A stretch of 64,000 nt of DNA, taken from positions 152,025 through 216,024 of IMG/VR virus record IMGVR_UViG_3300043446_004437, one strand, 5' to 3'. The translations under genes were made by a program, and so were the position numbers. Positions 27,090 to 55,406 of the stretch are shown here, in pieces (the first letter of the stretch is position 1; each line of letters begins with the position of its first letter). Under the pieces are notes generated by a model that saw nothing but the letters and a program-made list of their open reading frames with translations, had not been told where the DNA came from and ran no database searches.

Positions 27090-30000
27090 TTATTCAGTCC
27101 TTATTAATTGTTCGGAACTATTTATCACAGACTCTGATTCTGTTAAAAGATCTTTAGTATAAACAGAGGTGCCATAATTTCTTGTTACTAATTCCCAGTT
27201 AAGGGTTGCTGGAGTCCCATCTTCATAGTACTCATCCCAAAGAATTAATGGCCATTTTGACGCATTGTTATACAAATTATACAGTCTTAGAACTTCAACA
27301 AGAGCGTAAAATGTCCTCACCCTTTCTTCCCCCCTTGGTTCACCTTCGGAAAGTCTAGATGTATATTCGTTATTGTCCCAATCAAATTTGCTATTTAGTT
27401 CATATGTTTTGTTAAATACATAAGAAAAATTAACATAAAAAGGTTCTTTTAGATCAAAAAATTCTTCTTTAAATTTAAATACTATTTGATTAACATCAAA
27501 TTTATAATTTTTCATAAGAGCAAAAACATTTTCTTTACTTTTTTCCACGGCATCTGATGGAACATTGTAGAAGACTGTCCCTAATGTTCTTTGATACCTT
27601 TCTTTTAGATAATTAATTCTGTTATCATTCCCATTTGGCTCAAAATCTTCTTCTGTCTCAAATTTGTTTGGAGACGTTTTAGATTGTTTTATTCTCACAA
27701 CAAAAGTTTTATTTTCTAAAACCGTTTTTACAAACTCGGCCGCCAACATACCGGGGCTGCCAAAGTCTTCAATAATCAAGTCGTTTGTTATTGGCTCGGA
27801 ACTATATCTTGTTTGTTTTTCATCGTCTAAATTAAAAATTAATTTATTATCTATTGGCGTTATTGTATTTTGTAAATTTGAATCGTAAAACGCGCTTACA
27901 GGACCATAAAGATCAATCGAAGATTGAGTTGGTGTTAATTCATATGTAAAATAGTTAACAATATTTGGATTGAAATTTGGATCAACCACTTGAACCGATA
28001 GAACATTATGAGTTCCGTCAAACGGATAGCCAAGATTTTTGATTATTACTTTATCACCAGCAACAAGTTGATTGTTTTGTATTTTAGCTGGAATTAAATT
28101 ATTCTCTATGGCTCTAGGTATTGGATATCCGTACGCATCTTTTATAATCTGTTCATTGTCATCATAGTTGTATCCGCCAGTAACCAAGGTTGCGTAATAT
28201 TTATTGTTAACTAGTTTAATATTTTTTCCTATTATCCAACCATTTTTTGATGTTTCAGTATAACCAATCTGGATTTTTTCCGAAACGTTTATGCCATCTA
28301 AACGTACTGTAAATTTTACATTTGGATTTAAAACATCTTCTACATGTATTGTATCTCCGTCAGTAACCCCAGAACCGTTTAGCCCACTGCCCTTACTTAA
28401 AGTGCACAGAACTTTAAAGAAAGGCTCAAAGCCTGTTTTTTCTGGACCGAGGCCAGACAAACCCAATACCTGCGCATGAACAAGAGCATTTTCATAACTT
28501 GCATATCTTACAAAAGCTGAGGTATCTTTTTCCGACCAACCAAGACTCTTCATCAAATCATTTGTTCTTATATATTGGTATCCTTCCGCCGAACGAGTTT
28601 TTGTTCTGACTCCCAATATACCAGGAAGAAGGCTTATAGAATGATATCTGCCAACAACCATCCCCTGATTATAAGACAGGCCAGCTTCCATTGGTTGACC
28701 ATTTCTAGTAAGGTATTGCACATAGCAGCCGTGTTGATCTAGAAGGTTATTCCTAACCCATTTCCAAGCTTTCCAAACCAATGGCCCAAGAAGCAAACCA
28801 GCTCCAGCCACTATAGGCGCTGCTCCAACTCCCACTGCTGTGCCTGCAATAGCGGCACTTCCCGCAGAAGCTATCCCGTATCCGGCCGTACCTATGCCAA
28901 CTGCTAAACCAGCTGTGCCGGAGATAACTCCAGCTATTGCCGATGCATCTACCTGACCGTTATTGCCATTTTTCTGAGCTTGTTGTCTTATTGCGTCTCC
29001 GAGATTTGAATTTGTAAATCCAGATGCAGTTACATTAGCAATCACATCTTTAACTAAAGCAGAAGACCCACCAGTAAACTGCATGCCGCCAATTAGCTGA
29101 GGACTAAGTGAGTTACCCAACGCATCGAGGGATATTTCCCCACCCATTGTTAAGCCAGCATTTCCTGCTCTTAGGGAATCTAAGTATATTCTAGTATCGT
29201 TTCTTACGGTTTGAACATTCAACCAAGAATGCAGCCAAGAAGTCATAAACCATCTAGCTGGATCATTAATTGTAACAAGTGCATTAGGAGTTATAGATGT
29301 AACGTATCCAAGCTCGGAATTAAAATGATGCACGACTTGTTCAACTTCAAACATGCCATACATTCTTTCGTATATATCAGCCAAATATACTAAGTCATGT
29401 GGTCTTATGTCTGGGTTACCAAGAATTATTATCTCTCCACTATATATATCTTTTACCGATTCCCTCAAATGACTTAACGCAACCCTCTTGGCGCTCAATT
29501 CATCTGGTGCCCCAGTAACGTTTTTTGAAATACCTCTTCCAGTTTCAAATGGGTGTAATAGTGGATGTAAGAAACCAAAAAATCCGCTACCAACAACGTT
29601 GTCAAAATAAATTCCAGTTTCTACTGTAGTTTCTACCTGCCTATCTGCTGGAGCGCCTTTGTCCAAGGAAACTGTTACTGGGTATTTACCGTCAGAAACT
29701 GCTGTTATTGTAGTTGAAACACCAGAATTTTCTTGTATTTGATTTGAAATTATATGAGAAAAAGAACTTAGGTAATGTATTCTTTGGAATGGCTCTCTTA
29801 TTTCCACAACTGGTTCTGCGTACTCTCTTGTAAATGGGTTATCCACTGCCCTTAGTAGAGAGCCTGGTCGACCAAGTTGGTAATAAATAGAATCGTTTAA
29901 AGCTTTGTTTAAAATATTTGCTTGTCTTGCAAGTATGGAACTTTGTGAAAGACCATAGCCAGTTTGCAACATATTGAGTCTAAATACATTAAATAGTGCA

Positions 30001-33000
30001 GATAAGCTATCTGTTACTGCATTGAAGATTTGTCCAATACTTTTATCGTAAAAATCTCCTAAACTATTTAAAGTCTTACTTGCTAAATTTGTTGTGCTAT
30101 TTCCTTCGCTCTTGTTTTTATAAAGTAGTTCTAAAAACTTTTTCTTATCTTTAGCGTAAGTATTTCCTGGGAAAATATATGCTTGGAAAATTTTATCTAT
30201 TGGCTTAAAAGACCAAACATCCCTATTAGGATCATTGTTTAAATAATCTATTTTTCTATCTGGTTTCAAAACTAGCCAAGCTCTTGCATACGCATCAGAC
30301 CAAAGAGCCTGCCTAAATAAACCAACAAGATAATAAAACAAATCTTGAGGACACTTTATTATATTTCCCAGGTCTGCTTCTTCAACATCTTGACCATATA
30401 TATTTCTCATCTGAGTAACATCAAATAAATTTGATTTTAGTAAACTTATCTTTTCTACTGTAAGAGCATTAAAGTATTCTATTAAACCACCATTTTCTAT
30501 AGGCGCATCAATAAAATTCTTTCTTGAAAATTCTATTGCTTCTTGTTGAGAAGAACTTTTTATATCGCCAAATAATAAACTAAATTCATCTATAGCAGTG
30601 CTGCCTGTTTCCCCAAATTTTTTATAAACACCAAATTTTTCTGGCAACGGTTTACCGCCAAATATGTTTTGTATTTCTTCTGGGAAAGGAGTTGTATCAT
30701 TCCAATTCATCAAGTATGTATCTGCAAATATTTTTTTGACACTATCATAAGTATGATAACCATATCTAAATTGGTCCCAAATTTGTTGAGCTTGAGCTAA
30801 TGTTCTACCATTGCCAGCTATAACAGTTGTGTTTATATCATAATCTTCATCATAAAATTTTCTTGATTCAACAGAAGTTGAATCTTGATTTGAAAAAACT
30901 GAGGCAAACTCTACTCTACCGCTAGAGCTATAATCTTTGTCATTTGACTCACTCTTTAATAAATTAATTCCATACGTTACATCTTCTAGATTTTTTCTAC
31001 TTTCATCTCCAATTGGCTTTTGAATTAACGAGTAATAACTCTTGTAATTTCCACCAAATCTATAATCAGTTTCGTTGCTGTTGTTAGCGCTTTCGGGTAC
31101 GTATTGCCTTATTGCCTCCATGCTTGGGTTCTTTAACAGCGCGTAGAGATCGTCTGTCTTATTTGTTGAAACCCAATTTCCAAAACCAATCACAACAGAA
31201 TCTTCTGTCTCAATTCCAGGTGACCCAGGATTAAATGGTTGCAGTTCCTGACCAGTGTTTGGTGATTTTTTTATCTTAAAATTTTTGATAGGGACAACAG
31301 CACTGAATGCTACGCCAAGCGGGATCGTGTTCGGCACGAACGCAAAATAGCATTCTTCTACATCTGGTATTGGTGCGTAACCTTTTTTGTCGTAAATATA
31401 CAAATCTTGTTTTTCTGTATCTTTTTTTACAGAAACATCATAACTTAATATATCTAAATAAAAGGCTGCGTCGGGTGAAACAACTGCATCAACATCAGTT
31501 GATAAAGTTTGTATGACATCTGTTCCGTTTTGGTTTTCCTTGCTCAAATTCGTAGTTTTATTTTCTCCCCAAAGAAAATATGCCGGCTTACACACAACTG
31601 CACTTCCGTTGCCACCGTTGCCAGATGGATTATAAACTAACACATGCATATTTTGATAGTCTTTAGCTTCACCATAAACAGGAGCTTCTTCACTATCAAA
31701 ATAATATTTTTTAAATTTTTTAACCAGTGCGTTATCTGACACATTAACATTATAAGGCCATCTCATGGCTATATAGAATTGTTCTTCTAGATCATTTTTT
31801 GGCGGTTCCCATTCCAAATAGGTAAAAGGATTGGCTCCACCAAATTCTGGATTTAATTCTAAAATTTTAGGATTATTTTGGGAAGATATATTTTTTTCTG
31901 GTGTTGGCATTGTTACCTGTATAGCCTGTTCGTTTGCCACCTTGTCATATGCTTCTGCGTTAAGTGAAAAATCGAGAGGATTATTTAATATTTCATAAGC
32001 TATTGAACCAGATATACTTTGAGAATCTTGATAATTTATATCTGATATAAATAATTCTTTAAATTCTGATCCATAAATTTTTTCTACTTTATTTAATATA
32101 AAGTTTTTATGTGTTGAACCTTTGTCTGTTCCTTGATACCCTAGTTCTGCTAAACCATATTGGAATGAATACGTATCCAAAAAGTTTTCATCGTTTTTTC
32201 TAGTTGTAAAAAACGGAAATCTAAATCTACTAGGAAGTTGTTGTATCTGAGCATGCTTTGTGTTTCTTGTGTCTGAGACAATTTGTTCTCTAGTTCCCAC
32301 TGGCAAGTGAAAGCCCATTGTAACATTGCCTTTTGATTTTGGTAATTTTACAATTATATTTCCATTTGAATCTGTTATTTCTTGGAAATCTTTGTCCATA
32401 AAATTAATTAATATTTTTTGTGACTTCAAATATCCAGCTGTATTAAATATACCTTCTGCATTTTTTTGTAATGCAGCTATTTGATTCAACGCCTCAAGCG
32501 GTTCAGTCCCTCTTAAAAACGCTTCTGCGTCTGCGTAAGGATTTATCGATTTATTAACATCTGTCATTATTTGCATTAAATCAAAATCGGGTTCATTTAT
32601 TTGAGGAGGTATTATCCCTAATTCAGCTGCTTTTTCATCACCAGGATAACCAGTGGTAATAGGGACAACGCCAGATGTATACAACCAGTGAGGTTTGCCG
32701 TAAAAAATTGTTGACCTATCCTCAAATGGTCTAACTGCAACTATATAATTTGGAAGAAGTCTTGCGCAAGTTTGAAACAAATCCCAAACAGATCTCATAT
32801 ACGTTTGAGCTCTAAAAGAAACTTCATCAAACCCAGGCATGTCGTCATCAGAGTTTGGGCTTATTATACCTAGCGTCCTAAATATATTATTACCGCCTCT
32901 GCCACTTAAAACACCCAATAACCCAATGCCTACTCCTACGGTTCCAACAATTGGACCACCCGCTATAAGCATTGCGCCGCCTAACCCGCCTAAAGTAAGA

Positions 33001-36000
33001 CTCCTAAATAACGAAGCGCTTCCTTGAGCGTCTCTTATAGCCCCACCCTTTGTAGCTTGGTCAACAACAGCTGAGGCGTTTGGATCTCCAGAATCGTATT
33101 TAGACATCAAGCTATTCCAAGATCTATCAGACAATCTTGATAGGTATTCAAGTCTAGGATTTGGTTGATCTTCTGGCGTTATAGACGCTACGCTTGTCCA
33201 GCCATCACCTAAGTCCCCGCCTAAAAATTGTGCTATACCAGTTCCATTTCCTGGATATATATTTCTTTTAAATATTTCCATATCTCTTTGTGCGGAAAAG
33301 TTTGACCAAAGCTGACCCATCAAAGAAGCAACGGGATATCTAAACTCTTGCACACCTACGCCAACCATATTCAAAGCTGATTGACCTATGGCAGAACCGC
33401 TCATTTCACTTGCAGCCCTATGTGCATCTGCAATAGAATCAACCATAGCATAATGCTTTGTTGCCTCGGCCTCACTTAATGGCTGGTATAACATAGAACC
33501 AAAATGTCTTATGCCAAATTTATTCTCTGAAAATACTAATCCTCTGTATGCATTAGCAACGCCTTCTCTGAATCTAGAAGTGCCCATAGATAGCAACCTA
33601 ACCATAAGATCTCTTGGCTCTGAAAGCCACAATCCAGTGTTTATGCCACCATCTATTTTGCCGCTATCGCCTTTTTTATTTGTTGAATTTACAACTGCGC
33701 CAAGTTCTATGGCATCTGATTGAGCGGTTACGGTAACAACTTCTCCGTATTCAACTTGAGTTATGGTACCGTTAAACAACGTTTGCAAACTATTTGGGTT
33801 TGAACCATACCCGCCTCTTAGGTGAACTCTTACGCCAGGTTTTAAAACTATATTTTCTATATTTACAACATAATCATTTTTCATATGAGCCAAAAGATTT
33901 CTGGCTTTATTCAGAGTATTATCAAGTATTGACCCTATACCAGCAGAAACCGACGCACCAAGTGGCGAATCTGCGCTAAATATATCTGAAGATGCGGTTT
34001 TAGTTAGTTTTGAATAAAGATTAGATACTCTAAAAATTAGAGTATCTCCTAAAAGATCTTCTGAGGAAACAACAGAAAAATCTACAATTGATTGTAAACC
34101 ATAAAAATTATCAAACAATTTTACGCCAGCAAAATACCCACCTTCATCTATCAACCATAGCATGTATGTTGGAAACGCTCGTATCATTCTTCCAGAAACG
34201 TCACGGTATTGTGTGTCTACAAGCATTTTTTCCCAGTGCATGTTTACACTTTTTGGCGGGTCTCCTTTTCCTGAAGACCACTCAGGAACATTTTGATCAC
34301 CATGAGAAATTGGACTACCATAATCTGATAATGGAGTCATACCAGCAACAGCGGAACGTGTCGTCCCCAAAGCTGGGTTAGCGTGTTCATCTATTGGTAT
34401 TGGTGCTAATTCATATACTTTAGAATTTTTTTGTACTTTTACTCCATCAATTGTTAAATAAAATCTTCCATTTTTTTCTGTATCAATATAACCAAAATTA
34501 GTTCCATAAGCAGTTACGAGCATTGCTGGAATTTTATTAGGGTCATTTGGGTCTTTAATTGGCAGCATGTATATATTGGCGTGCGCGTTTAATTCTTCTG
34601 GAATAAAACTTATGTCACTTTCGTCAGGAAGACTGTATTCTCCAGCCAAAGCCATTTCTACTTCTTTATAAGTTTCAATACTTGATGAAGATAAATTGCC
34701 TACTTGATAAGGAGCAGAGAATATTTTATTTACTATTTCAGGTTCTTGTTTTTCCACAAAGTCAATGTAATCGGTCAACACTTGCGAACTAGTTTCTTTT
34801 GCTATTTCTGTTGCACCGCTGGGATCATAAGGATACTTTATCCAACTTTCAAAAGCTTTTAAGAAAATTTTATAATCTATTCCATTTTCTTTTAACCAAT
34901 TAGTTAATGATCTAAGTTTTATCTTTTTTTCTTCTATATCTGAAGCAGAATATTCTCTAATAAACTGTGGTAAATATTTGTACGCTTTGGCGACTTGTTG
35001 TGATTCAGATACAACTTCATCTGTAGGCCCAAAAATAATGGGCTTAACCTGATTTGAAACATTATAAACAATATCTTTGTCAAACATTTCAAAAGATCTA
35101 AAATAAAAATCTGGATCTAAAGTTCCAACTGTTTCATTTTTTGAATCTTTTACCTCAAGCGGCAGGTCTGGATATGCATTAAACGCGCCCCACATTTGTT
35201 TAATTCTTAAAAATGGATTTCTTTTTGAAGAAAAATTATCTATAAAATCTTTTTGTTGAACAGAACTTAATTTTTCTCTTGTTTGTTGGAAGACATCAAA
35301 GTCCATAAGTGTTATGTTTACTTGGTAAACATGCGGATAATCTGGGACTGTCGAAACAGAATAATTTGACGGCATAACATACTTGATGCCACACAGCGCC
35401 GTTATAATATTTTTTATCCCCATAAATCCTAATACTCCGCTAGCGTGTTCTAATCTTGCAAGAGCATTTACGTGATCAAAAATCTTTTTAATTTTAGCTA
35501 ATTCTTTTTCGCCAACTACAGTCATTGATATATTGATATAAGAATCTTTCCCACCTATATGTTGATAGGTTGGCTCATCTTGCATTTGCAGTTGCAGCTT
35601 AGCTAAGTTATTGCCAAGAGAAACGCTAACACCAGTTACCGTTACAGAAGCTGGATCTAAGTCCACTTTCATCATCGGCACTTCCCATTCCCTAAATTGG
35701 AAAGAGCCAGATTTTGCTCTAATTGCTTCCATTAAAGCTTGTATCGGACCACTAGAATAGAACCTTTCATACACAAGCACATTGAAAGCATCGCTCACTT
35801 GATTTTTTATTTCTTTTTTAAGATTTTGATACGCTTCAGAACCGAGTTCCCCATCTGCAGGTATCGTTATCTTTTGTTCTTTTGCTTTTTTATTTACTAA
35901 TGTATTTGTTGTTTGATCAAGATAAGCTTTTGAACTTAAAGCTATTTTTTTCATATACTCTTTTACTGCGGTCAGCGTTACGCTTGTGAGAGTTTCGCCG

Positions 36001-38543
36001 TTGACGATATATGTAGATGGGCCTATTCCTGCGGGTACTTCGTTGCTATTAATGTCTTCTATATATTTTTTTTCTGAAGAAGATAAACCTTTGTTTTCTA
36101 TTTTAAAAACTTTTACAAGATAAGCGTATACTTTTTCTTTTACTTCTCCATCTGAATTGCCTGCTACTAAAATATCAATTGAGTCTTTTAAGATACTTCT
36201 AATGTTTCTATTATATTGGCCATTAATAGCTAAGTTGTAAGTATTTGCTAAAGTTACGCCATAATCAGAAGCATTGTTGACATTGATGCCAAAATAGTTT
36301 AATATCCTTGACCAAAAATCTTCGTTTTGATCAGACATAAGTTCTTCATTATTTTGTCTAAAAGAGCTCATATCTGGCAAGAATATTTTTGTTTGAGATT
36401 CAACCGGTATATAAAAAGAAATATTATTTCCATTAGTCCATTCGCTGTATATATTTGTAGCTAATTGGCTCTCATTTAAATCAACAGTATTTATGCCGTA
36501 AGATTTTTCTAATGAACCAGAAGAATTAGGTACTGTGTTTGCAAATGGTTCTTTTTGGTCTGCGCCTTTGACATCTGTTTGCTTTTGCAAAAATTCTCCA
36601 TTAACATAATTACTTAGAACTCCAGCTGCTTTGCCCATGTATTGTCTGTACTTACCCCAATGTATCGCTTGATTAAAATCTGTTATCATTGGCATAAGTG
36701 GTTTATGGTTAAAGTTTAATAACTCAATATCTACCGCTAACGCAAATGGGAAATTTGGTATGGTTTGTACTTGCATATTAGAAAGTGCAACTGCCGTAAT
36801 GCCGTGAACGCTATTTAGATAAGAATTTTTAACCGGAAGAAAAGGAGAATATTTAAAAGCGGCCACCATCCCTCTAAGAGAAGAAAGAAACTTATCTATT
36901 TTTTTATCTGAATCACCGTTAGAAGAAAAGTCTATAACAAAATTATCTTTTAGTTGGATTCTAGATGCATCTTCTATTGATATGCCCCAAATTTCTTCAT
37001 AGTTAGGAAAGAATAGTCTAATGGAAATAGAGGTTTCTTTATAGCCAGAATTAAATTTTGGAGAATTTTTTTGCCTTAATGCTCCTCCTGTTAAACTGCC
37101 TGTTTTAAATGCGGTATTAATGTTAATTGATAATGGTGGAACATAAAAGTTTGCTGCACCTAATCTAAAATGGAAAATATCAGGAGACTGTGGAGCTATA
37201 TTTGCCCTATAAGGAGATTTCTGTAAAACTTCTCTGATTCTTTCTGCGGTGTTTTTAAAATTCTTTGGATCATTTGGCCCATAAAAAACTAAAGAAAATA
37301 CATCTTGACCACTTCTAGCGCCCAAAGCTGTTTGCAAGGATTTCAAAAAATCTTGCATGTTATTAACCGTATCTTCTTCTCCTCCTCCAGTGCCGTCGTT
37401 TGAATAGTCACCTGTTACAGCAAGTGCGTCAAAGAAAAAGGTAACCAAAGACGGGAAATAAATATTTACCATTGACAATGTAATTGGATCTCTTGAGATC
37501 CTTTGAACAGTAAAAATTAATTGATCCAACCAAGCTTGATCTTGCGTTGCATTAAAATAATCAAATGCTGACTTTGTAACGGTTGCTGAACTGGACAATC
37601 TTTTTTCCCCAAACTTAGCTATATCAGATGCATAAGCCGCAAGTGTTAAAAGACCAGAATCTTTTATCCTTAAAAAAATTCGCTCTAATTGATCTGCGTC
37701 AATTGCTCCACTTTTGGGGTCAATTGCTGGCTCGTTGCCTTCAAGTGGTTTAAAAGCTCTATAAAAGCCAGTCCAATCAACTGCGGCAACGTTTCTATCT
37801 GGTGCAGCGTTTCGTCGCACACTATCCAATTTTTCTTTTACAAGTGCTGTATCGTATTGCCCATAAACCACTTTAAACACTTCTTCTAAATAATTCAAGC
37901 CAGTGCTTGCGCCAGCACCTAATTCATCGCCCCCTAAAGATAATTGATCATTTAACCAAGAGAGTTCTTGTAAAGTTATTGTTCCTAAATTTTCGTTTTT
38001 TGTTTTTGATGAACTGTAATATTTTTTCCAAATTTTTAATCTATTATATAATACGTCTGCGGCTACTATAACAGTTGAAAAACTGGCACTACCCAAAAAT
38101 GCTTTATAAATAAAAAAATCTTCTCTTGCCTCTTCTGCGTTTAAAGAATATTTACTGCGGTAGAGGCCGGATGCGTCATCGACGATAGAAGAATACCTGG
38201 TTAAGATAGAATCATCTAATTCAGCTAACGGTTGTTTTATCCCAGTCAAATAATATCTTATACCAACGTTTGCCGCAAAAACGCTAAACTGATCTTTTTC
38301 AGATAAGTTCAAAGAAAATTTAGGATAAGACTCAAGAACTTGATCTGTTACATATGCTGGCAGTTGGCCATAATTAAAAAAGGTGTCCAACTGCTCAATG
38401 CTAACTGATTTGTTAACATTATCTGGATTTAAAAAATTTATTATTTTTTCTATATAAGAAAGATTCATTAAATAATTTAAATATTTATATGCGGCAGAAT
38501 CTATTGTATGTTCTAGAAAATAATTAACACTTGGTTGAGCCAT
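27090..38543 (-). CDS. giant baseplate hub protein (gp27/VgrG-like core) with C-terminal thermonuclease-like domain (3817 aa)
   Basis: Hub motifs PGVRVHLRGGYG..LFNGTITQV..VTVTAQSDAIEL and GEIIILGNPDIRPHDLVYLAD..FEVEQVVHHF; SNase motifs VTDGDTI, VRLDGINVSE, ERYQRTLG. Confidence 0.75.
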   Translation of the reverse strand: MAQPSVNYFLEHTIDSAAYKYLNYLMNLSYIEKIINFLNPDNVNKSVSIEQLDTFFNYGQLPAYVTDQVLESYPKFSLNLSEKDQFSVFAANVGIRYYLTGIKQPLAELDDSILTRYSSIVDDASGLYRSKYSLNAEEAREDFFIYKAFLGSASFSTVIVAADVLYNRLKIWKKYYSSSKTKNENLGTITLQELSWLNDQLSLGGDELGAGASTGLNYLEEVFKVVYGQYDTALVKEKLDSVRRNAAPDRNVAAVDWTGFYRAFKPLEGNEPAIDPKSGAIDADQLERIFLRIKDSGLLTLAAYASDIAKFGEKRLSSSATVTKSAFDYFNATQDQAWLDQLIFTVQRISRDPITLSMVNIYFPSLVTFFFDALAVTGDYSNDGTGGGEEDTVNNMQDFLKSLQTALGARSGQDVFSLVFYGPNDPKNFKNTAERIREVLQKSPYRANIAPQSPDIFHFRLGAANFYVPPLSININTAFKTGSLTGGALRQKNSPKFNSGYKETSISIRLFFPNYEEIWGISIEDASRIQLKDNFVIDFSSNGDSDKKIDKFLSSLRGMVAAFKYSPFLPVKNSYLNSVHGITAVALSNMQVQTIPNFPFALAVDIELLNFNHKPLMPMITDFNQAIHWGKYRQYMGKAAGVLSNYVNGEFLQKQTDVKGADQKEPFANTVPNSSGSLEKSYGINTVDLNESQLATNIYSEWTNGNNISFYIPVESQTKIFLPDMSSFRQNNEELMSDQNEDFWSRILNYFGINVNNASDYGVTLANTYNLAINGQYNRNIRSILKDSIDILVAGNSDGEVKEKVYAYLVKVFKIENKGLSSSEKKYIEDINSNEVPAGIGPSTYIVNGETLTSVTLTAVKEYMKKIALSSKAYLDQTTNTLVNKKAKEQKITIPADGELGSEAYQNLKKEIKNQVSDAFNVLVYERFYSSGPIQALMEAIRAKSGSFQFREWEVPMMKVDLDPASVTVTGVSVSLGNNLAKLQLQMQDEPTYQHIGGKDSYINISMTVVGEKELAKIKKIFDHVNALARLEHASGVLGFMGIKNIITALCGIKYVMPSNYSVSTVPDYPHVYQVNITLMDFDVFQQTREKLSSVQQKDFIDNFSSKRNPFLRIKQMWGAFNAYPDLPLEVKDSKNETVGTLDPDFYFRSFEMFDKDIVYNVSNQVKPIIFGPTDEVVSESQQVAKAYKYLPQFIREYSASDIEEKKIKLRSLTNWLKENGIDYKIFLKAFESWIKYPYDPSGATEIAKETSSQVLTDYIDFVEKQEPEIVNKIFSAPYQVGNLSSSSIETYKEVEMALAGEYSLPDESDISFIPEELNAHANIYMLPIKDPNDPNKIPAMLVTAYGTNFGYIDTEKNGRFYLTIDGVKVQKNSKVYELAPIPIDEHANPALGTTRSAVAGMTPLSDYGSPISHGDQNVPEWSSGKGDPPKSVNMHWEKMLVDTQYRDVSGRMIRAFPTYMLWLIDEGGYFAGVKLFDNFYGLQSIVDFSVVSSEDLLGDTLIFRVSNLYSKLTKTASSDIFSADSPLGASVSAGIGSILDNTLNKARNLLAHMKNDYVVNIENIVLKPGVRVHLRGGYGSNPNSLQTLFNGTITQVEYGEVVTVTAQSDAIELGAVVNSTNKKGDSGKIDGGINTGLWLSEPRDLMVRLLSMGTSRFREGVANAYRGLVFSENKFGIRHFGSMLYQPLSEAEATKHYAMVDSIADAHRAASEMSGSAIGQSALNMVGVGVQEFRYPVASLMGQLWSNFSAQRDMEIFKRNIYPGNGTGIAQFLGGDLGDGWTSVASITPEDQPNPRLEYLSRLSDRSWNSLMSKYDSGDPNASAVVDQATKGGAIRDAQGSASLFRSLTLGGLGGAMLIAGGPIVGTVGVGIGLLGVLSGRGGNNIFRTLGIISPNSDDDMPGFDEVSFRAQTYMRSVWDLFQTCARLLPNYIVAVRPFEDRSTIFYGKPHWLYTSGVVPITTGYPGDEKAAELGIIPPQINEPDFDLMQIMTDVNKSINPYADAEAFLRGTEPLEALNQIAALQKNAEGIFNTAGYLKSQKILINFMDKDFQEITDSNGNIIVKLPKSKGNVTMGFHLPVGTREQIVSDTRNTKHAQIQQLPSRFRFPFFTTRKNDENFLDTYSFQYGLAELGYQGTDKGSTHKNFILNKVEKIYGSEFKELFISDINYQDSQSISGSIAYEILNNPLDFSLNAEAYDKVANEQAIQVTMPTPEKNISSQNNPKILELNPEFGGANPFTYLEWEPPKNDLEEQFYIAMRWPYNVNVSDNALVKKFKKYYFDSEEAPVYGEAKDYQNMHVLVYNPSGNGGNGSAVVCKPAYFLWGENKTTNLSKENQNGTDVIQTLSTDVDAVVSPDAAFYLDILSYDVSVKKDTEKQDLYIYDKKGYAPIPDVEECYFAFVPNTIPLGVAFSAVVPIKNFKIKKSPNTGQELQPFNPGSPGIETEDSVVIGFGNWVSTNKTDDLYALLKNPSMEAIRQYVPESANNSNETDYRFGGNYKSYYSLIQKPIGDESRKNLEDVTYGINLLKSESNDKDYSSSGRVEFASVFSNQDSTSVESRKFYDEDYDINTTVIAGNGRTLAQAQQIWDQFRYGYHTYDSVKKIFADTYLMNWNDTTPFPEEIQNIFGGKPLPEKFGVYKKFGETGSTAIDEFSLLFGDIKSSSQQEAIEFSRKNFIDAPIENGGLIEYFNALTVEKISLLKSNLFDVTQMRNIYGQDVEEADLGNIIKCPQDLFYYLVGLFRQALWSDAYARAWLVLKPDRKIDYLNNDPNRDVWSFKPIDKIFQAYIFPGNTYAKDKKKFLELLYKNKSEGNSTTNLASKTLNSLGDFYDKSIGQIFNAVTDSLSALFNVFRLNMLQTGYGLSQSSILARQANILNKALNDSIYYQLGRPGSLLRAVDNPFTREYAEPVVEIREPFQRIHYLSSFSHIISNQIQENSGVSTTITAVSDGKYPVTVSLDKGAPADRQVETTVETGIYFDNVVGSGFFGFLHPLLHPFETGRGISKNVTGAPDELSAKRVALSHLRESVKDIYSGEIIILGNPDIRPHDLVYLADIYERMYGMFEVEQVVHHFNSELGYVTSITPNALVTINDPARWFMTSWLHSWLNVQTVRNDTRIYLDSLRAGNAGLTMGGEISLDALGNSLSPQLIGGMQFTGGSSALVKDVIANVTASGFTNSNLGDAIRQQAQKNGNNGQVDASAIAGVISGTAGLAVGIGTAGYGIASAGSAAIAGTAVGVGAAPIVAGAGLLLGPLVWKAWKWVRNNLLDQHGCYVQYLTRNGQPMEAGLSYNQGMVVGRYHSISLLPGILGVRTKTRSAEGYQYIRTNDLMKSLGWSEKDTSAFVRYASYENALVHAQVLGLSGLGPEKTGFEPFFKVLCTLSKGSGLNGSGVTDGDTIHVEDVLNPNVKFTVRLDGINVSEKIQIGYTETSKNGWIIGKNIKLVNNKYYATLVTGGYNYDDNEQIIKDAYGYPIPRAIENNLIPAKIQNNQLVAGDKVIIKNLGYPFDGTHNVLSVQVVDPNFNPNIVNYFTYELTPTQSSIDLYGPVSAFYDSNLQNTITPIDNKLIFNLDDEKQTRYSSEPITNDLIIEDFGSPGMLAAEFVKTVLENKTFVVRIKQSKTSPNKFETEEDFEPNGNDNRINYLKERYQRTLGTVFYNVPSDAVEKSKENVFALMKNYKFDVNQIVFKFKEEFFDLKEPFYVNFSYVFNKTYELNSKFDWDNNEYTSRLSEGEPRGEERVRTFYALVEVLRLYNLYNNASKWPLILWDEYYEDGTPATLNWELVTRNYGTSVYTKDLLTESESVINSSEQLIRTE

Positions 38544-38552
38544 AGATTACCG

Positions 38553-39005
38553 TTAAATCATATTCAGTTTAGAGATAGCATTTATTCTATCCGAGGCGGA
38601 GTTTTCTTGAGCAACCCCACTATAATTATTAATTATACCATTTGGTTGTATATTTGTAAAGTTTGTTTTCATAAAGGGACTTGCGTGTGATTCAAAGTTT
38701 TTTACGTATCTTGCTTGCTGAAGCCTTTGATTCATATAGCCAGAATTGTTCATTTGGATATAGGCCGATTTGCCATCCATCAACCCTTCTTTGGATCCTT
38801 TTATAGTATCTGAGGTATTTAATCTGCTTTTAGATTCATAAACTGTATCTTTAGCATAGGCTGCATTTGCAGCTGATTTATTACCTTTATTTGATGCTAT
38901 TTTTGCTGCATAGGCGTTTGATGTTTTAGTCCTTGGAGAAGTATCTTTTGTTTTTGCAGCGGCTTCTTTAAGGTTTTTATTTTGTTTATCAGCGCCAAAA
39001 ATCAT
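38553..39005 (-). CDS. small basic K/A/N-rich protein (150 aa)
   Basis: ORF track; AAAGGT SD-like sequence; low-complexity basic N-half. Confidence 0.7.
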   Translation of the reverse strand: MIFGADKQNKNLKEAAAKTKDTSPRTKTSNAYAAKIASNKGNKSAANAAYAKDTVYESKSRLNTSDTIKGSKEGLMDGKSAYIQMNNSGYMNQRLQQARYVKNFESHASPFMKTNFTNIQPNGIINNYSGVAQENSASDRINAISKLNMI

Positions 39006-39014
39006 AATACACCT

Positions 39015-41882
39015 TTAGAAAGAACTAGCTATTTCTGCGTATGGGTCTTTCCCAGCCTGAGGAGATCTACGATACATAGTAGTGTTCATATTGAATTTTC
39101 CTAACCCCATAGCTTGTTCTCTAAAATTAGAAACATCTTTAATATTACCATATAAATTAACTTTATAATCTATATTTGGGTTATAAGCCATCCTACCTAT
39201 TTGAGGAATTTCTGCTAATCTTTTTGGATAATCATCTTCATATGCCGAACCACCTGGTAAAAGCGGTGGCCCCTGTATATCTTCTTGACTTCTATCTTTA
39301 ACACCTTCATAAACAAAACTGCCAACCACAAGAGCACCAGCTGCTATAACTGAATTTTTAAATAATTTATTTTCTTGAAATAAAGTTTTTAAACTACCAT
39401 CTTTAATAAACTCACTAAACCTTTTAAAAGACGCTTTTGCGACAGGCGCTTCTTCTCCAGAAATAACCCTTCTTAATTCTTCTGCTATTTCTGTTGTTGG
39501 CTCAGAAGCTGCTGGCGCTAACCTTTCTGCAAAAGCGGGGTCAAAAAATTCCGATCCTAATTCTTTGTATCTTGAATTATCTAAAATTGCTTTTAATTTA
39601 TTTGATAAACCAGCTCTAATTTTATTAATATCTCTATTCATAAAAACATCATTTAATATTTGTCTATCATCGGATAATAGTGCCAGCAAATCTAATTCTG
39701 GTGATACGCTTTGTTCTCCAAATGCTATATAGCGACGAAAATCTAAAATGCCCTGTGCCGTTTCTTTTGCTTTAATAGTTATATTTTCTGTTGTTGCATC
39801 TCCTAATAAACCAATTGTTTTTTGAACGTCGTCACTTTCTAAAATATCTTTAGCGTAGTTGGCTTTTCTTTTTACATCTGCTGCGTTCATCATTTGTCTT
39901 AAATTTTGGGAAAATTCACCTTCATCTCGTAAAACAGATTCTGGAAAATAATTTAAATCTTCATACAAAAAATCTAATCCAAGTTGATTGCTTCTCTTTT
40001 TCAGAATATTTATCATTTCCTCAACAGAAACGTTAGACGCTCTAGCCGCTTCTCTTATTTCGTTAGTGACTCTATCGCCCATAGCTAATTTTCTTTTAAA
40101 TAATTCATCAATAGCTTCGTTATTTAAATCTTTTATATCGGCAGAGAAGTTAATTATCCTTGATGCTTCGTCATTATGTTTTTGTAATAAGAAATCTGCG
40201 GCTCTTCTAGATTCTTCGGTATATTCTAATGATGCCAAAGACGGATCAATAACTCTACTTCTTCTTCTTATTTCATTTTGAGCTTCTTGATTTGCTGCGC
40301 TTATTATTCCTGCACCGTGCAGTCTTGTTAAACTTGAGTATGCGTGTTTTTCATTTGCTCCAAACAATCTTATTAAAAGATCTCTTCTTTGTTCTGCCGT
40401 GGCTGGCATTTTTTCTTCAGATAATTGACCAATAATTTCCGCAAATGCGTTTGGATCAGTAGCCGATCCTTTTATGCCTTCAGCTATTCCTCTCATCATT
40501 GTTTCTATGTCAACAATTTGCATCCTGCCTTTTAACAATTGTTGATCTATTTTTGGTAAAAATCTTTCTTTAAATTTTTCAGCTTTTGCGGCATCTGTGA
40601 CCGCCATTTCTGTTGCCGCTTCAATAACCTGTGTGTATTCAGCTCCAACTCTTTTACCCAAGTTTTGGATTGCTTGTGTCCCTATTTCAGAAAGTGATGC
40701 ACCACCATTAACTTTTTGTGCTGCTCTTATAGCTGCGTCTACATCGTTAGAAAAATCTATTGCAGATATTAAACTGCCTACTCTTTCTCTAATTATATCA
40801 ATATCATCAATTACTTTGGGCATTACGCCAGAAGCACCTTGCGCAAAGTCAATAGCTACTTCTTGAGAAACTAAACCTACTTGATGTTCAAGAATTTTTT
40901 TAATTCTTCCTTCTTGCCCACCCATATTAATCAACTCTTCTATTAAATCTTGAGTTTGATTGAGCTTAGATCCAACCACCATTGATCTATTAACATAAGT
41001 TCCTAACAATGAAGCTTCCTGTGAAGTTGCAACATTAAACATTTTTTTAAAAATAGCTTCTTCTTTCATTGCGCTGAAAACAGGATTATTTTTATTTGTT
41101 TCAAAAATATTATTAATTGTTTGAAACTGATTATTTTCTAAAGCCGTTTTTAATGAATTATATATAGATGCATCTAATTGATCTTTGTATGCGTTTGTTT
41201 CAAGAAGTTTTTGTAATTCTTCTTTGATCAAAAAACCTTGTTCTTTATTAAAAGCATTTTCTTCTGCAAATAATTTAAATATTCCAGTTCTTGTATATCC
41301 TTCGCTGTTGGCTAATGAAGAAGAACCTTGCCTTTGAATTGCTCTTAGTATTCTTCTGTTATGGGCGCCGGCTGTTCCCTCAAGTGAGCCATCTAATAAC
41401 CTAAGTCCGGCTTTTCCTCTTGATTCAGCAAAGTCATATATGTCTATAACTAGTTCTTCTGCTTGTTCTGCATTTATCTTTTTGTATTTTGAATCTTCCC
41501 AAAGAACTGAATGAAGTTCGTCTAACGATGCCGCTTTAGAACCACCAACAGAAGATCTAAAATCTTCTAACAAACCCCTAAATCTTTCGTTCTGGAAATA
41601 TGATCTTAATGTTCCCTCGTCTAAATTTGCTTTTGCATATATTGATTCTTCTGGACCAGAAGGCTGTCTATATATGCCAAAAAGAAGCCTTTTTTTATCT
41701 GCGTTATCTTTATACGTCATCATTTTAGTTAAGACTTTATCGTCTAAGTCAAAACCACCCAATGAATGGAAAAACCTGTCTGTCATTCCGGGACCAAATA
41801 ATAACCTATTATCATTCACCCTAAATTCCATAAGTTGTGTTGATATACTTTCCCCTACATCTTTTATATCAAACCCGGTGCT
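39015..41882 (-). CDS. putative two-barrel RNA polymerase, catalytic (beta-prime-like) part; track ORF starts at ATG 41831
   Basis: LLFGP..SLGGFDLDDKV, YRQPSGPEE, LLGTYVN and VAIDFAQG parallel RdRP/YonO motifs; the frame is open from 41882; C-terminal hydrophobic segment SVIAAGALVVGSFVY. Confidence 0.65.
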   Translation of the reverse strand, partial: STGFDIKDVGESISTQLMEFRVNDNRLLFGPGMTDRFFHSLGGFDLDDKVLTKMMTYKDNADKKRLLFGIYRQPSGPEESIYAKANLDEGTLRSYFQNERFRGLLEDFRSSVGGSKAASLDELHSVLWEDSKYKKINAEQAEELVIDIYDFAESRGKAGLRLLDGSLEGTAGAHNRRILRAIQRQGSSSLANSEGYTRTGIFKLFAEENAFNKEQGFLIKEELQKLLETNAYKDQLDASIYNSLKTALENNQFQTINNIFETNKNNPVFSAMKEEAIFKKMFNVATSQEASLLGTYVNRSMVVGSKLNQTQDLIEELINMGGQEGRIKKILEHQVGLVSQEVAIDFAQGASGVMPKVIDDIDIIRERVGSLISAIDFSNDVDAAIRAAQKVNGGASLSEIGTQAIQNLGKRVGAEYTQVIEAATEMAVTDAAKAEKFKERFLPKIDQQLLKGRMQIVDIETMMRGIAEGIKGSATDPNAFAEIIGQLSEEKMPATAEQRRDLLIRLFGANEKHAYSSLTRLHGAGIISAANQEAQNEIRRRSRVIDPSLASLEYTEESRRAADFLLQKHNDEASRIINFSADIKDLNNEAIDELFKRKLAMGDRVTNEIREAARASNVSVEEMINILKKRSNQLGLDFLYEDLNYFPESVLRDEGEFSQNLRQMMNAADVKRKANYAKDILESDDVQKTIGLLGDATTENITIKAKETAQGILDFRRYIAFGEQSVSPELDLLALLSDDRQILNDVFMNRDINKIRAGLSNKLKAILDNSRYKELGSEFFDPAFAERLAPAASEPTTEIAEELRRVISGEEAPVAKASFKRFSEFIKDGSLKTLFQENKLFKNSVIAAGALVVGSFVYEGVKDRSQEDIQGPPLLPGGSAYEDDYPKRLAEIPQIGRMAYNPNIDYKVNLYGNIKDVSNFREQAMGLGKFNMNTTMYRRSPQAGKDPYAEIASSF

Positions 41883-52590: not shown

Positions 52591-53322
52591 TTAAGAAATT
52601 ATTTGATCTGTTATAAAATTAGAATAGGTTGCACTAACTGTTTCACCATCAACTGTATCACCAAAAATATTTCTATTAATCTTTAAAATATTTTCTTCTT
52701 GTGTTTTAGTCATGTCCCCATATCTTTCTTTTTCATAAGCCATGTGGACCATTGGCTGTATTCCTCTTGCCATAAAAGTATATGTTTGTTCAGTTATAAG
52801 GTCGTCAACAGACATTGTTTGACCTTCATCTATTATTGTAACACCAAATATTTTCATTTTTGCTGCGCTGCCGTATTCATTAAAAAATGTTAAAACAATA
52901 TCAAACGGTGGCAGCATGTCAGCTAGTGGCGCAAAAAAACCATTGCTTCTAGCAAGATATTCTTTATATTGTTTTATTCTATAAAATGCGTATTCATTAA
53001 ATACTGTAAATATAAGCGAACCAGCAATTGTTCTGCCTCCTTTAATAAAACCTCTAACATTTGAATGCCCTAAAGTTCTAATCGGGCTATTTTCTCTGTG
53101 AACTGAATAAGATATAGTTTGTATTTCTCCTATATCTATAACATCTCCAGAGCTAGTTATTCTGCCATCTGGGCCTATTTGGGGGATAATCATTGTAGCA
53201 ACTGTGTCCGCCCCGGAAAAGGACATATTAGAAAGTATTGATTCTAAATTTGTTGCTGGATCGTAGCTAGGTTTTATTTCAGAAAAACTATAGATACTTG
53301 AAGGTTGATTTACTTCTTGCAT
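52591..53322 (-). CDS. tail tube-like protein, paralogue 2 (243 aa; start corrected to MQEVN)
   Basis: FSGADTVA..ISYSVHRENSPIRTLG..GGRTIAGSLIFTVF..LPPFDIVLTFFNEYG; the track start at 53355 lies inside the terminator. Confidence 0.75.
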   Translation of the reverse strand: MQEVNQPSSIYSFSEIKPSYDPATNLESILSNMSFSGADTVATMIIPQIGPDGRITSSGDVIDIGEIQTISYSVHRENSPIRTLGHSNVRGFIKGGRTIAGSLIFTVFNEYAFYRIKQYKEYLARSNGFFAPLADMLPPFDIVLTFFNEYGSAAKMKIFGVTIIDEGQTMSVDDLITEQTYTFMARGIQPMVHMAYEKERYGDMTKTQEENILKINRNIFGDTVDGETVSATYSNFITDQIIS

Positions 53323-53340
53323 TTTACCTAACCAGTCTTT

Positions 53341-53378
53341 AAAAAAGTAATGCATGGGAGAGATCCCCCATGCATTAC
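53341..53378 (-). terminator. intrinsic terminator after major tube gene
   Basis: Minus strand GTAATGCATGGG-GGATCTCT-CCCATGCATTAC then TTTTTT. Confidence 0.85.
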
Positions 53379-53401
53379 CGGTGTCTTCAGTTAGTTATAA
53401 A

Positions 53402-54103
53402 CTATGGACGTATGATATTTGTATTCAGTTGCGAGTTCTTAACTGCATCCTGGCTTAAGATATCATTAAGCTTTAATGATGTTGCATCGGCATCTTTGTC
53501 TACCTTAATGGCATACATCGGTCCGAGTTCTCTAGCTACATAGGTCATTGTCTCTTCTATGACAATGTCATCCATTGAAGCGCCAGAACCTTCATTCAAA
53601 AGTTCAACTCCATAAATTGAACGAACTGCTGCTTGTCCATATTCATTAACAAAAGTTACTGTAATGTCAAATGGCGGGATTTGGTCAGCGTAGTATGGGA
53701 CTTTCTTTACGACGTCCTTGCTCCAGCCGCTGCCATCTTTGATTCCAGGGATACCTCTACCAACGGATTGTGTATCGCCAGGAAGTGTATTATGTGCTCT
53801 TGTAAAGAACATTTGTTTTGAATCTTGTGATTCATAATTTTTGTCAAGCATTGTGTAAAGTGCTGGACGATCAAATACTGTGAAGATTAACGAACCTGCA
53901 ATGCCACGCTTTCCTCTAGAAAATGATCTTGGGTTTGGTGAACCCATTGTATAGATAGGAGCTTTTTCTCTGGTTACTGAAAATGTGATTCCAGAAAGAG
54001 CACCAATTTCTACTCCACCAAATGTTGCAACTATGTCTGCTCCAGAAAAAGTTGTGTAGGTGTTAAGATATTTGTTTACTGGGTTGTATGATTCTGCTGC
54101 CAC
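53402..54103 (-). CDS. major tail tube protein (233 aa)
   Basis: TTFSGADIVATF..FSVTREKAPIYTMGSPNPRSFSRGKRGIAGSLIFTVFDR..IPPFDITVTFVNEYG; follows the sheath gene; followed by a terminator. Confidence 0.85.
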   Translation of the reverse strand: MAAESYNPVNKYLNTYTTFSGADIVATFGGVEIGALSGITFSVTREKAPIYTMGSPNPRSFSRGKRGIAGSLIFTVFDRPALYTMLDKNYESQDSKQMFFTRAHNTLPGDTQSVGRGIPGIKDGSGWSKDVVKKVPYYADQIPPFDITVTFVNEYGQAAVRSIYGVELLNEGSGASMDDIVIEETMTYVARELGPMYAIKVDKDADATSLKLNDILSQDAVKNSQLNTNIIRP

Positions 54104-54125: not shown

Positions 54126-55406
54126 TTATATATTAATGGCTATTTGAACCTGGATCGAATTAAGTTCGAACGCAGGTGTTAATACGAGGTCTACAATCGC
54201 CATGTTATCCGAGGGAACATATGTGACATTGAAATCACTTTCCAACAAGGCACCTTTTATCTGCATACCGCGTAAACCGGAAGAAATTGCTGTTTCCATT
54301 GAATTTCTTACCTGTATTGTTGATGGTTCACCAACAAACTTTTGACACACTTGACGAACAAGCTGTGAAGCCTCATCTACAATTCTCTTTGTTGACAGTC
54401 TCAAATAATCTGAATTTGTAGCCGAGTAAGTTACTGCTCCACCAAATACCGCAATTTTGTTAAAGTTAAGAACTACAGTGTTTACTGCAGCTTCGTTCAA
54501 TGTTGTCTGCTGAGCTCTTGTAGGAGCATAGCGCAAAGCCTGTACGTTGTACAATGCTTTATTTGTTATACCCGTATAAGAAGGTGTCCTGCTCATTGTG
54601 GCTGCCAATGAAGCAGCTCCGTTTGAGTAACCGTAATCAGTTGTGCCGCCAGAACTAATAGTTGCATATCCAACTGGCTTTACTTCTGCAGCAACTATAG
54701 TTACATAAGGACCAACTACTTTAAAGACAGAATTATTTCTATCCGCCAATAATGACAAGCTTGAGCTAAGATGAGATGCTACTTGAGCTGGAGTTAGGTT
54801 TTCTTTAACACCAGCTACATATGGAGCTATACCCATAACGGCAATACATGGATTTGTATTTTCAGAAATTGCTTTTGTTCTATACGCTACTTTATATGCC
54901 CAATTGTTTGCTGTTGTGCTTGAGTTATTTGCATGAAAGCGATAGTCGTCTGCATTAGGTGTTGCGCCGGTTGTTGAATCCCAGTCTAAAGAGTTTCCGC
55001 CTCTACCCCAAGGGACTATGATATCTGGGATAGCAGCTTCTGCAGCGGCAAATGCTGCATCTAGCATGTTATCGTTGTTAGAAGAGTATCCTGCGGTTGC
55101 GCTCTTCAGGTAGCCATTTGTATGATCAAATTGAGTATCTGAAGGAAGAGCGACTAAATGAATTCTTTCAGCTCCTGCTGTAATTAATTCTAAAAATGCT
55201 TTATGTAAGTCAGAACCTGACCCAAACGCATCAATTACATCTTTTTCGGTTGTTGCCTGAACGACATCCAGATTGGCAACATTACCTGTGCCATCATCGG
55301 TGCTTCTTTTGGCTATCGCCACGATTCTTGGCCCTGCTGGGACATCTTGTCTTGAGACGCTGTAGAAGCGATCTCTAATTAATGTTGTTACACCTGGTGT
55401 AGCCAT
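54126..55406 (-). CDS. major tail sheath protein (426 aa)
   Basis: MATPGVTTLIRD N-terminus; C-terminal sheath motif YLRLSTKRIVDEASQLVRQVCQKFVGEP..VDLVLTPAFELNSIQVQI; precedes the tube gene. Confidence 0.85.
   Translation of the reverse strand: MATPGVTTLIRDRFYSVSRQDVPAGPRIVAIAKRSTDDGTGNVANLDVVQATTEKDVIDAFGSGSDLHKAFLELITAGAERIHLVALPSDTQFDHTNGYLKSATAGYSSNNDNMLDAAFAAAEAAIPDIIVPWGRGGNSLDWDSTTGATPNADDYRFHANNSSTTANNWAYKVAYRTKAISENTNPCIAVMGIAPYVAGVKENLTPAQVASHLSSSLSLLADRNNSVFKVVGPYVTIVAAEVKPVGYATISSGGTTDYGYSNGAASLAATMSRTPSYTGITNKALYNVQALRYAPTRAQQTTLNEAAVNTVVLNFNKIAVFGGAVTYSATNSDYLRLSTKRIVDEASQLVRQVCQKFVGEPSTIQVRNSMETAISSGLRGMQIKGALLESDFNVTYVPSDNMAIVDLVLTPAFELNSIQVQIAINI

Follow-up and report, generated by a model that had tools for sequence, protein, structure and literature searches.

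The window analysed here, a stretch of 64,000 nucleotides (nt) from the IMG/VR virus record IMGVR_UViG_3300043446_004437 (positions 152,025 to 216,024), carries on its minus strand two adjoining open reading frames (ORFs), ORF A and ORF B, of 660 and 938 amino acids (aa), which we read, with justification from their relatives, as one conserved tail protein of about 1,600 residues. Judged by gene order, this protein occupies the slot of gp146 of Bacillus phage 0305phi8-36, annotated as 'hypothetical tape measure protein', and its carrier appears to be a myovirus of ~216 kb distantly related to that phage. We propose that the N-terminal ~1,000 residues may form a very divergent two-barrel nucleotidyl transferase, a beta-like domain being followed by a beta-prime-like one, most likely an RNA polymerase (RNAP) with a DxDD metal loop in place of DxDxD. 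The helical C-terminal third, a hydrophobic segment and a C-terminal module would anchor the protein in the tail lumen or at the hub, and the protein would leave through the tail together with the DNA, like the RNAP-tape-measure fusion gp96 of Thermus phage P23-45. In the window phage the full-length chain would be made only if the ribosome shifts by +1 at a CGG codon (41875-41877); otherwise a 660-aa N-terminal fragment would result. Delivery of a two-barrel polymerase-like enzyme through the tail is a tentative reading whose probability we place somewhat short of even. Its polymerase part is plausible and suggestive, not established.

Homologues in the databases are mostly one chain of 1,560 to 1,640 aa that spans ORF A and ORF B end to end, and 46 of the 66 related loci have a single ORF of 1,500 to 1,750 aa, which is what justifies the one-chain reading. 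In the window the two ORFs lie 37 nt apart in different frames, the downstream frame being +1 and open from 41882; stop-codon reassignment is ruled out as the cause of the split, since the frames differ. The ATG at 41831 listed for ORF B is not a conserved start, because relatives have Leu at this position (QLMEFRV vs. QLLEFRV); the closest database homologue, P0002, is 87% identical to ORF B. The original prediction had joined the ORFs into one chain. The relatives bear this out, but the difference in frame makes a +1 shift necessary. The overlap of the ORF A start codon with the stop codon of the upstream 2,193-aa gene, also noticed in that prediction, is real and recurs in P0002 and most related loci.

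The window represents the structural arm of a myovirus genome and includes sheath and baseplate wedge genes; the nearest isolates are those of the Bacillus phage 0305phi8-36 group. The gene order is gp143/gp144 homologues, gp145 homologue, the protein in question, a 150-aa gene and the gp147 hub homologue, which places our gene between tail chaperone-like genes and the baseplate hub. The order of ~2,200 aa, our protein, ~150 aa and a hub of more than 3,100 aa is retained in most of the 66 related loci that extend far enough. Comparison of the whole protein with gp146, and of the family alignment with whole gp145 and gp146 by hhalign, revealed no similarity. The C-terminal 150 aa show a weak collinear match to the C-terminus of gp146 (hhalign E 0.11, BLASTP E 0.068), and within the last ~110 residues the collinear elements are the hydrophobic segment, a linker, Y.VN..G and G.FN.N. 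The upstream 2,193-aa ORF, taken earlier for the tape measure, turned out to be a homologue of gp145 (BLASTP 5e-53) with no homology to gp146. The tape-measure label belongs, if anywhere, to our protein, and since it fills that slot itself, the earlier wording of an ejection together with the tape measure has to be changed. A crAss-like identity of the phage, raised by the giant ORFs, was rejected in view of the sheath and baseplate wedge.

A profile search of 1.84 billion representatives identified 224 clusters (defined at 50% identity) at E ≤ 1e-3, 146 of them at E ≤ 1e-30; the 150 matches listed are all clear family members, with no bridging sequences toward other families among them. IMG/VR holds 164 relatives, and the 66 loci examined include the window's own contig (L005). 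Family members turned up only in contigs of viral or metagenomic origin, none came from the 185,579 GTDB species genomes, and tblastn of ORF A and ORF B gave no match in 50,697 GenBank phage records. Pfam and PHROG scans of ORF A, ORF B, their neighbours and 61 (34 + 27) family members returned no informative family. The expectation that pipelines would call both ORFs hypothetical holds, as neither has a Pfam or PHROG match. Searches of PDB with full-length and core profiles produced noise only. The family is a tail protein of uncultured freshwater jumbo phages, a widespread group, and is wholly unannotated.

All motifs listed in the original prediction are present in the window sequence where it had placed them (Table 1), and they prove to be invariant or near-invariant columns among 38 distinct homologues. 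In P0002 numbering the invariant positions are K221/K224/R225, D362-G363, R438, K447, K479, D504, L694-K702 (LGGFDLDDK), R725-Q-P727, E732, G947/N951 and D998. About 13 invariant charged or polar residues are spread over ~640 residues in the N-terminal two-thirds (P0002 ~360-1000). An enzyme-like reading is favoured because most of the invariant residues (D-G, R, K, K.E, D.DD, R.P, E, N and D) persist in a set only 16-23% identical; they look catalytic, and the set resembles an enzyme active-site signature. The acidic loop reads D-L-D-D and is not of the DxDxD type. Toward the other end of the protein, the C-terminal ~90 residues are conserved in the family, and the sole hydrophobic window of ORF B lies at aa 823-844.

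An AlphaFold model was built on a 34-sequence alignment for the region equivalent to P0002 195-1135, with the sequence of L001 (an intact relative that shares ~67% identity with the window; 964 aa). The model has a predicted local distance difference test score (pLDDT) of 77.3 and a predicted template modelling score (pTM) of 0.77, and was reproduced in a second run. It begins with the DG strand and a long helical hairpin. Residues 263-319 then form a beta-rich block whose hairpin bears the invariant R and K, and helices separate it from another such block at 438-565. A largely helical part comes last, one of its helices, 32 residues long, beginning at LG.Y.NR; after residue ~570 the model is mostly helical. 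The invariant R438, K447 and K479 (P0002) are located on the beta-hairpin and the next strand. The two beta-rich domains thus follow each other in the polymerase order, the R/K-bearing one first and the FDLDDK-bearing one second. Within the later block the LGGFDLDDK loop comes after two strands and a short helix and is itself followed by a strand. NADFDGD in the beta-prime barrel has such surroundings (strand, strand, short helix, acidic loop and strand), and the fit of the modelled neighbourhood of FDLDDK to a barrel of this type is suggestive.

A Foldseek search of PDB with the 964-aa model placed QDE-1 at rank 1 (7y7t_A, E 1.5, 817 columns), gp62 of phage P74-26 at ranks 2 and 7 (8f5m; rank 2 is 8f5m_B) and chain B of a yeast Pol II complex at rank 24. 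The P74-26 protein in 8F5M is a close homologue of gp64 of P23-45, a non-virion two-barrel RNAP (PMC10770324). Despite the poor E-values, it is hard to ascribe to chance that QDE-1 and gp62 take the top two places, because there are very few single-chain two-barrel RNAPs among the 350,542 chains. The motifs also show a weak collinear likeness to YonO and to RNA-dependent RNA polymerases (RdRPs), one that calls for two large insertions. Its best element is FDLDDK(V)L, which looks like the invariant FDNDGDK(A)L of the YonO family minus one residue, and the invariant K is separated from the first Asp by 251 residues here vs. 264 in YonO.

Several results weigh against a polymerase. The Foldseek matches in PDB are all insignificant (E ≥ 1.5, probability 0.09, template modelling score about 0.17), and a 456-aa core-only model that contains both beta domains (pLDDT 77.9) has no polymerase among its top 50 matches. 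The comparison of profiles came out negative: hhalign of the family against YonO, taken as a single sequence and as a 16-sequence alignment in local, alternative-hit and global modes, gave a probability below 1%, and hmmsearch-based PDB profile searches were empty. No match to Pfam PF05183 (RdRP) or RNA_pol was found in the 61 members, whereas YonO homologues match PF05183. In every aligned member DxDxD is replaced by F-D-L-D-D-K (D.DD), the R.P loop comes after the acidic loop and not before it, and LG.Y.N lies ~250 residues past the acidic loop vs. ~55 in YonO. The genome of phage 0305phi8-36 codes for a YonO-like RNAP at another place (PMC7824862), and analogy with that phage therefore does not demand a polymerase in the virion. 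[quoted passage not shown] The earlier claim of a divergent RNAP survives in part: the two beta-rich domains and the QDE-1 and gp62 matches speak for it, but the E-value of about 1.5, the lack of profile similarity and the missing DxDxD do not. The structural comparison itself points both ways: QDE-1 and P74-26 gp62 come out as the top two at an insignificant level and the core-only model recovers no polymerase.

These results leave room for another possibility, namely that the protein resides in the tail lumen in the tape-measure slot and its conserved N-terminal module is some other enzyme or a device for penetrating the membrane or cell wall, the likeness to RdRPs and YonO being coincidental. 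We regard this as quite possible, if rather doubtful. It accords with the tape-measure-like position and C-terminal architecture, with DxDD in place of DxDxD and with the lack of a significant polymerase match by any method. The best matches of the core-only model are coiled-coil-hairpin proteins (membrane-fusion proteins, GreA/Gfh1 and HelD), among them proteins that combine a hairpin with a beta domain, such as the membrane-fusion ones, and the sole significant structural relatives are uncharacterized phage proteins. These come from a Foldseek search of BFVD, which gave three significant matches (E 1e-9 to 3e-6), all to unnamed phage proteins, and reached a giant protein of Virus NIOZ-UU157 (A0A7S9XE14) at E 0.025. 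However, lysozyme or peptidase domains, which are usual in tape measures, were not detected in any of the 61 members scanned. An acidic triad loop with several R/K residues suits phosphoryl or nucleotidyl transfer, and the top two PDB places of QDE-1 and gp62 would have to be a coincidence.

The BFVD entries A0A6J5NTF7, A0A6J5M9G6, A0A6J5MEC6 and A0A7S9XE14 are uncharacterized proteins of 850-1,140 aa and more, structurally related at 12-15% identity. The predicted fold thus appears to be wider than the family defined by sequence and may reach PAU/PTm1-like jumbo phages of Bacteroidota.

The polymerase-like reading can be set against known systems. In P23-45, gp96 is a tape measure protein with an N-terminal virion RNAP (PDB 8H2M/8H2N; PMC10770324). 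Both gp96 and our protein are giant, have a tape-measure position, an enzyme-like N-terminal part of ~1,000 residues and a helical C-terminal part with hydrophobic sequence, show, apart from the acidic loop, no detectable similarity in sequence to known RNAPs and are expected to pass through the tail. They differ in that gp96, a siphovirus protein of 5,002 aa, has a canonical DFDGD and a metallopeptidase domain, whereas our protein has DLDD, belongs to a myovirus and has about 1,600 aa and no peptidase; RNAP activity is proven for gp96 and predicted here. Among the Foldseek matches listed for the 964-aa and core-only models, gp96 is absent. [quoted passage not shown] It is likewise absent among the PDB matches listed, and a fragment of a crAss-like giant protein is at BFVD rank 27 (E 3.3).

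With YonO of SPbeta and the cellular RdRPs, QDE-1 included (the PF05183 clade of single-chain two-barrel RNAPs), our protein shares the order of weak motifs, that is, a basic N-terminal motif, DG, the R..K hairpin, the acidic loop with an invariant Lys, the G..N helix and (I/V)D(F/Y). Significant profile or structural similarity is missing, and the triad is one residue shorter. In our protein, unlike YonO, a helical hairpin of ~60 residues separates DG from the R..K hairpin; there are also ~190 extra residues from the acidic loop to the G..N helix and a ~600-residue C-terminal tail part, and the gene lies in the tail module and not among the early genes. As for gp146 of 0305phi8-36, a virion protein by mass spectrometry, it has the same slot between the gp145 and gp147 homologues and a similar C-terminal layout (E about 0.07-0.1), but it is 2,537 aa long, the catalytic-looking motifs are all missing from it, and over the N-terminal 1,400 residues there is no similarity.

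The second main result concerns the junction of ORF A and ORF B. ORF A ends in AAG CAC CGG GTT TGA, and omitting the C of the CGG codon restores the conserved frame of the family. This codon is the only in-frame CGG among the 19,425 codons of the window; the other two frames contain 143 and 148. Wherever the gene is split in the related loci, an in-frame CGG stands a few codons ahead of the frame-0 stop, and the family sequence returns once its C is dropped. What is read next is in every case a GGN codon (Gly). In one locus (L069, the contig of P0027) the split occurs at AAG CGG AAT, at the same linker glycine as in the window. In another (L012) the restored sequence, EWDG-A-G-VLN, matches the DG....N pattern of the family, and the pieces on either side meet on the family alignment with zero gap, as do the pieces in L061. 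The phenomenon extends to neighbouring genes: the hub gene carries junctions in L011, L012, L015 and L069, L033 has five junctions, and in the L037/L046 lineage at least 10 are chained through all three giant genes. As a consequence, gene callers fragment the giant genes at CGG junctions into up to five pieces.

A codon was counted as a junction when it stood no more than 25 codons ahead of an ORF end and the +1 frame stayed open for at least 100 codons. By this definition, 23 of the 26 in-frame CGG codons in the near clade are +1 junctions. Nine control codons were at junctions in 0-4 of 95-997 cases, with AGG at 3/997, GCG at 3/648 and TGG at 4/732, while CGT, CGA, CGC, GGG and CCG gave none. 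In distant clades CGG is an ordinary rare codon and the genes are intact. Identical junctions recur in contigs of different metagenomes, which makes random assembly error unlikely. Scans of the window and 50 loci for transfer RNA (tRNA) genes found none, hence no candidate decoder of CGG or of a quadruplet, and searches of the literature for phages that shift by +1 specifically at CGG returned no report. Most simply, the ribosome would shift efficiently by +1 at a CGG that is not decoded, or would read a quadruplet there. In this phage clade CGG looks like an obligatory +1 shift or quadruplet-decoding signal at an otherwise unused codon.

In the region 41831-41900, the junction lies in an imperfect local duplication of ~28 nt, which reads TGFTGVNIK and then, in the +1 frame, TGFDIKDVG, and P0002 has a single TGFTNVDMKGVG. 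Because of the duplication, the shifted product would have an insertion of ~6-8 residues in the linker between the beta domains.

Alternatively, the gene may be truly split or broken in the window phage, giving two subunits (beta-like and beta-prime-like, the second starting from ATG 41831), a pseudogene or an assembly error. The differing frames, the stop two codons after CGG, the location of the break in the linker of variable sequence that joins the beta domains (L069/P0027 is broken there too) and the resemblance of the local sequence to an imperfect duplication would all suit such a break. Nevertheless, we consider it unlikely. The Met at 41831 is replaced in relatives and no Shine-Dalgarno sequence is visible nearby; moreover, the break holds the window's only in-frame CGG, the excess of junctions at CGG over the control codons is large in the near clade, and identical junctions across metagenomes and the exact abutment of the pieces at L012 and L061 would be left aside by it.

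Translation through CGG as proposed here is similar to hungry-codon +1 shifting of the yeast Ty3 and prfB type in that a rare or undecoded A-site codon is followed by a one-base shift to a well-decoded codon (GGN here) and a frame-0 stop occurs soon after. It differs in that, in place of one conserved site, there are many, spread over three giant genes and with no common slippery P-site codon, and that the trigger codon is otherwise absent from the reading frames of the genome. The most far-reaching form of our proposal combines a new family of single-chain two-barrel polymerases, with a DxDD-K loop in a tape-measure-slot protein of freshwater jumbo myoviruses, with obligatory +1 or quadruplet CGG(N) recoding, on which it and the two giant tail proteins next to it would depend in some members of the group; taken as a whole, we regard it as possible though doubtful.

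That the protein is a purely structural internal tail protein without catalysis, its invariant residues serving folding or contacts with the tube, the gp145-like protein or the hub, seems very unlikely, since nine consecutive invariant residues (LGGFDLDDK) and isolated invariant D, R, K, E and N at 16-23% identity would be unusual for a scaffold, even though no enzyme family was detected, the protein is large and mostly helical after model residue ~570 and its C-terminus is conserved as in tape measures.

If the polymerase reading is correct, tail-delivered RNAPs would be a recurring solution that is found also in contractile-tailed jumbo phages, beyond one Thermus siphovirus, and ours would be a second, independent case after P23-45. 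The supposedly universal DxDxD of two-barrel polymerases would then be replaceable by DxDD, which bears on the limits of divergence of an ancient fold and on the host-independent start of transcription in large phages. Even if the protein is not a polymerase, the 224 clusters represent a large unannotated family of enzyme-like virion proteins whose candidate active site is sharply defined. The CGG pattern points to a natural system in which one sense codon acts as a dedicated +1 shift signal across many sites and which gene callers mishandle.

Table 1. Features of the ORF A/ORF B locus and its surroundings (window positions), followed by CGG junction sites in related loci (positions in the respective locus)
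Feature	Position	Strand	Description
ORF A	41869-43851	minus	660 aa; aligns to residues 1-660 of fused homologues; N-terminal part of the protein with K..KR, DG, R..K, K.E, VY.DP and RFA..SE motifs and first beta-rich domain
ORF B	39015-41882 (open frame); 39015-41831 (from listed ATG 41831)	minus	938 aa; C-terminal part of the protein with second beta-rich domain, helical region, hydrophobic segment and C-terminal module
ATGA	43848-43851	minus	ORF A start codon overlapping stop of upstream 2,193-aa gene
CGG codon	41875-41877	minus	Proposed +1 shift site, AAG CAC C/GG GTT TGA
KLPKRLRAFFSER	43153-43191	minus	K, KR and R kept in at least 90% of homologues
EFDGISPIN	42757-42783	minus	DG invariant, N near-invariant; strand directly before long helical hairpin in model
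YQVTLRGG..IKSAA	42511-42564	minus	Beta-hairpin; R and K invariant, loop length variable
EEAIKSD	42418-42438	minus	K.E motif; K invariant, E near-invariant
FRVNDNRLLFGPGM	41784-41825	minus	Two strands leading into short helix before acidic loop
LGGFDLDDK	41736-41762	minus	Nine-residue invariant loop (D.DD then K); candidate metal-binding site
RQPSGPEE	41646-41669	minus	Invariant R.P...E loop between two strands, 27 residues after acidic loop
LGTYVNRS	40983-41006	minus	G and N invariant; start of 32-residue helix in model; candidate bridge-helix-like element
VAIDFAQG	40836-40859	minus	D invariant
Hydrophobic segment NSVIAAGALVVGSFVYEGV	39300-39356	minus	Kyte-Doolittle 1.5; weak transmembrane-like helix
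C-terminal module GPPLLPGGSAYE ... YKVNLYG ... GKFNMNTT ... ASSF	39018-39272	minus	Conserved
2,193-aa gene	43848-50429	minus	Homologue of 0305phi8-36 gp145 'virion structural protein'
Two ORFs, 209 and 167 aa	50439-51578	minus	Homologues of 0305phi8-36 gp144 (2e-6) and gp143 (6e-17), 'hypothetical tail chaperonins'
150-aa gene	38553-39005	minus	Conserved; follows the gene of our protein in most related loci
3,817-aa giant baseplate-hub homologue	27090-38543	minus	0305phi8-36 gp147; PHROG 20474 labelled 'endolysin'
Sheath gene	54126-55406		
Baseplate wedge gene	22367-23533		
CGG junctions, L011	10757, 21810		
CGG junctions, L012	11204, 17846		
CGG junction, L015	17812		
CGG junction, L025	12251		
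CGG junction, L026	12281		
CGG junction, L029	12326		
CGG junction, L030	12314		
CGG junctions, L033			5 sites
CGG junctions, L037			At least 10 sites
CGG junction, L061	13301		
CGG junction, L064	12650/12656		
CGG junctions, L069	6012, 10258		

Some other genes of the window deserve mention. The hub homologue (27090-38543) is twice the size of gp147 of 0305phi8-36 (1,903 aa) and matches PHROG 20474 at 2e-132 in five stretches; the hubs of the relatives also exceed 3,100 aa. Directly after the sheath gene, two adjacent paralogues of 254 and 233 aa (52591-54103) match PHROG 9206, 'major head protein'. In 0305phi8-36 the position after the sheath is taken by the tail tube protein gp140 and its paralogue gp141. 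Because the pair sits where that phage has gp140/gp141, the head-protein label is probably misleading.

The block of baseplate and tail-fibre genes includes, next to the wedge gene, a 415-aa exonuclease-type protein (21101-22348; PHROG 284, 6e-44, SbcD/Mre11-like labels). Downstream of the baseplate genes there are two more giant ORFs of 2,046 and 1,436 aa (10104-20554), presumably fibres, with no Pfam match and a weak match to PHROG 'virion structural protein'. In the segment 59829-63045 the G+C content rises from about 33% to 45-53%, and two pairs of paralogues are found there (PHROG 2295 twice and PHROG 7759 twice). The 368-aa paralogue has a Ser/Thr-rich N-terminal region followed by a body very rich in Gly, Ser and Ala, which accounts for the raised G+C content.

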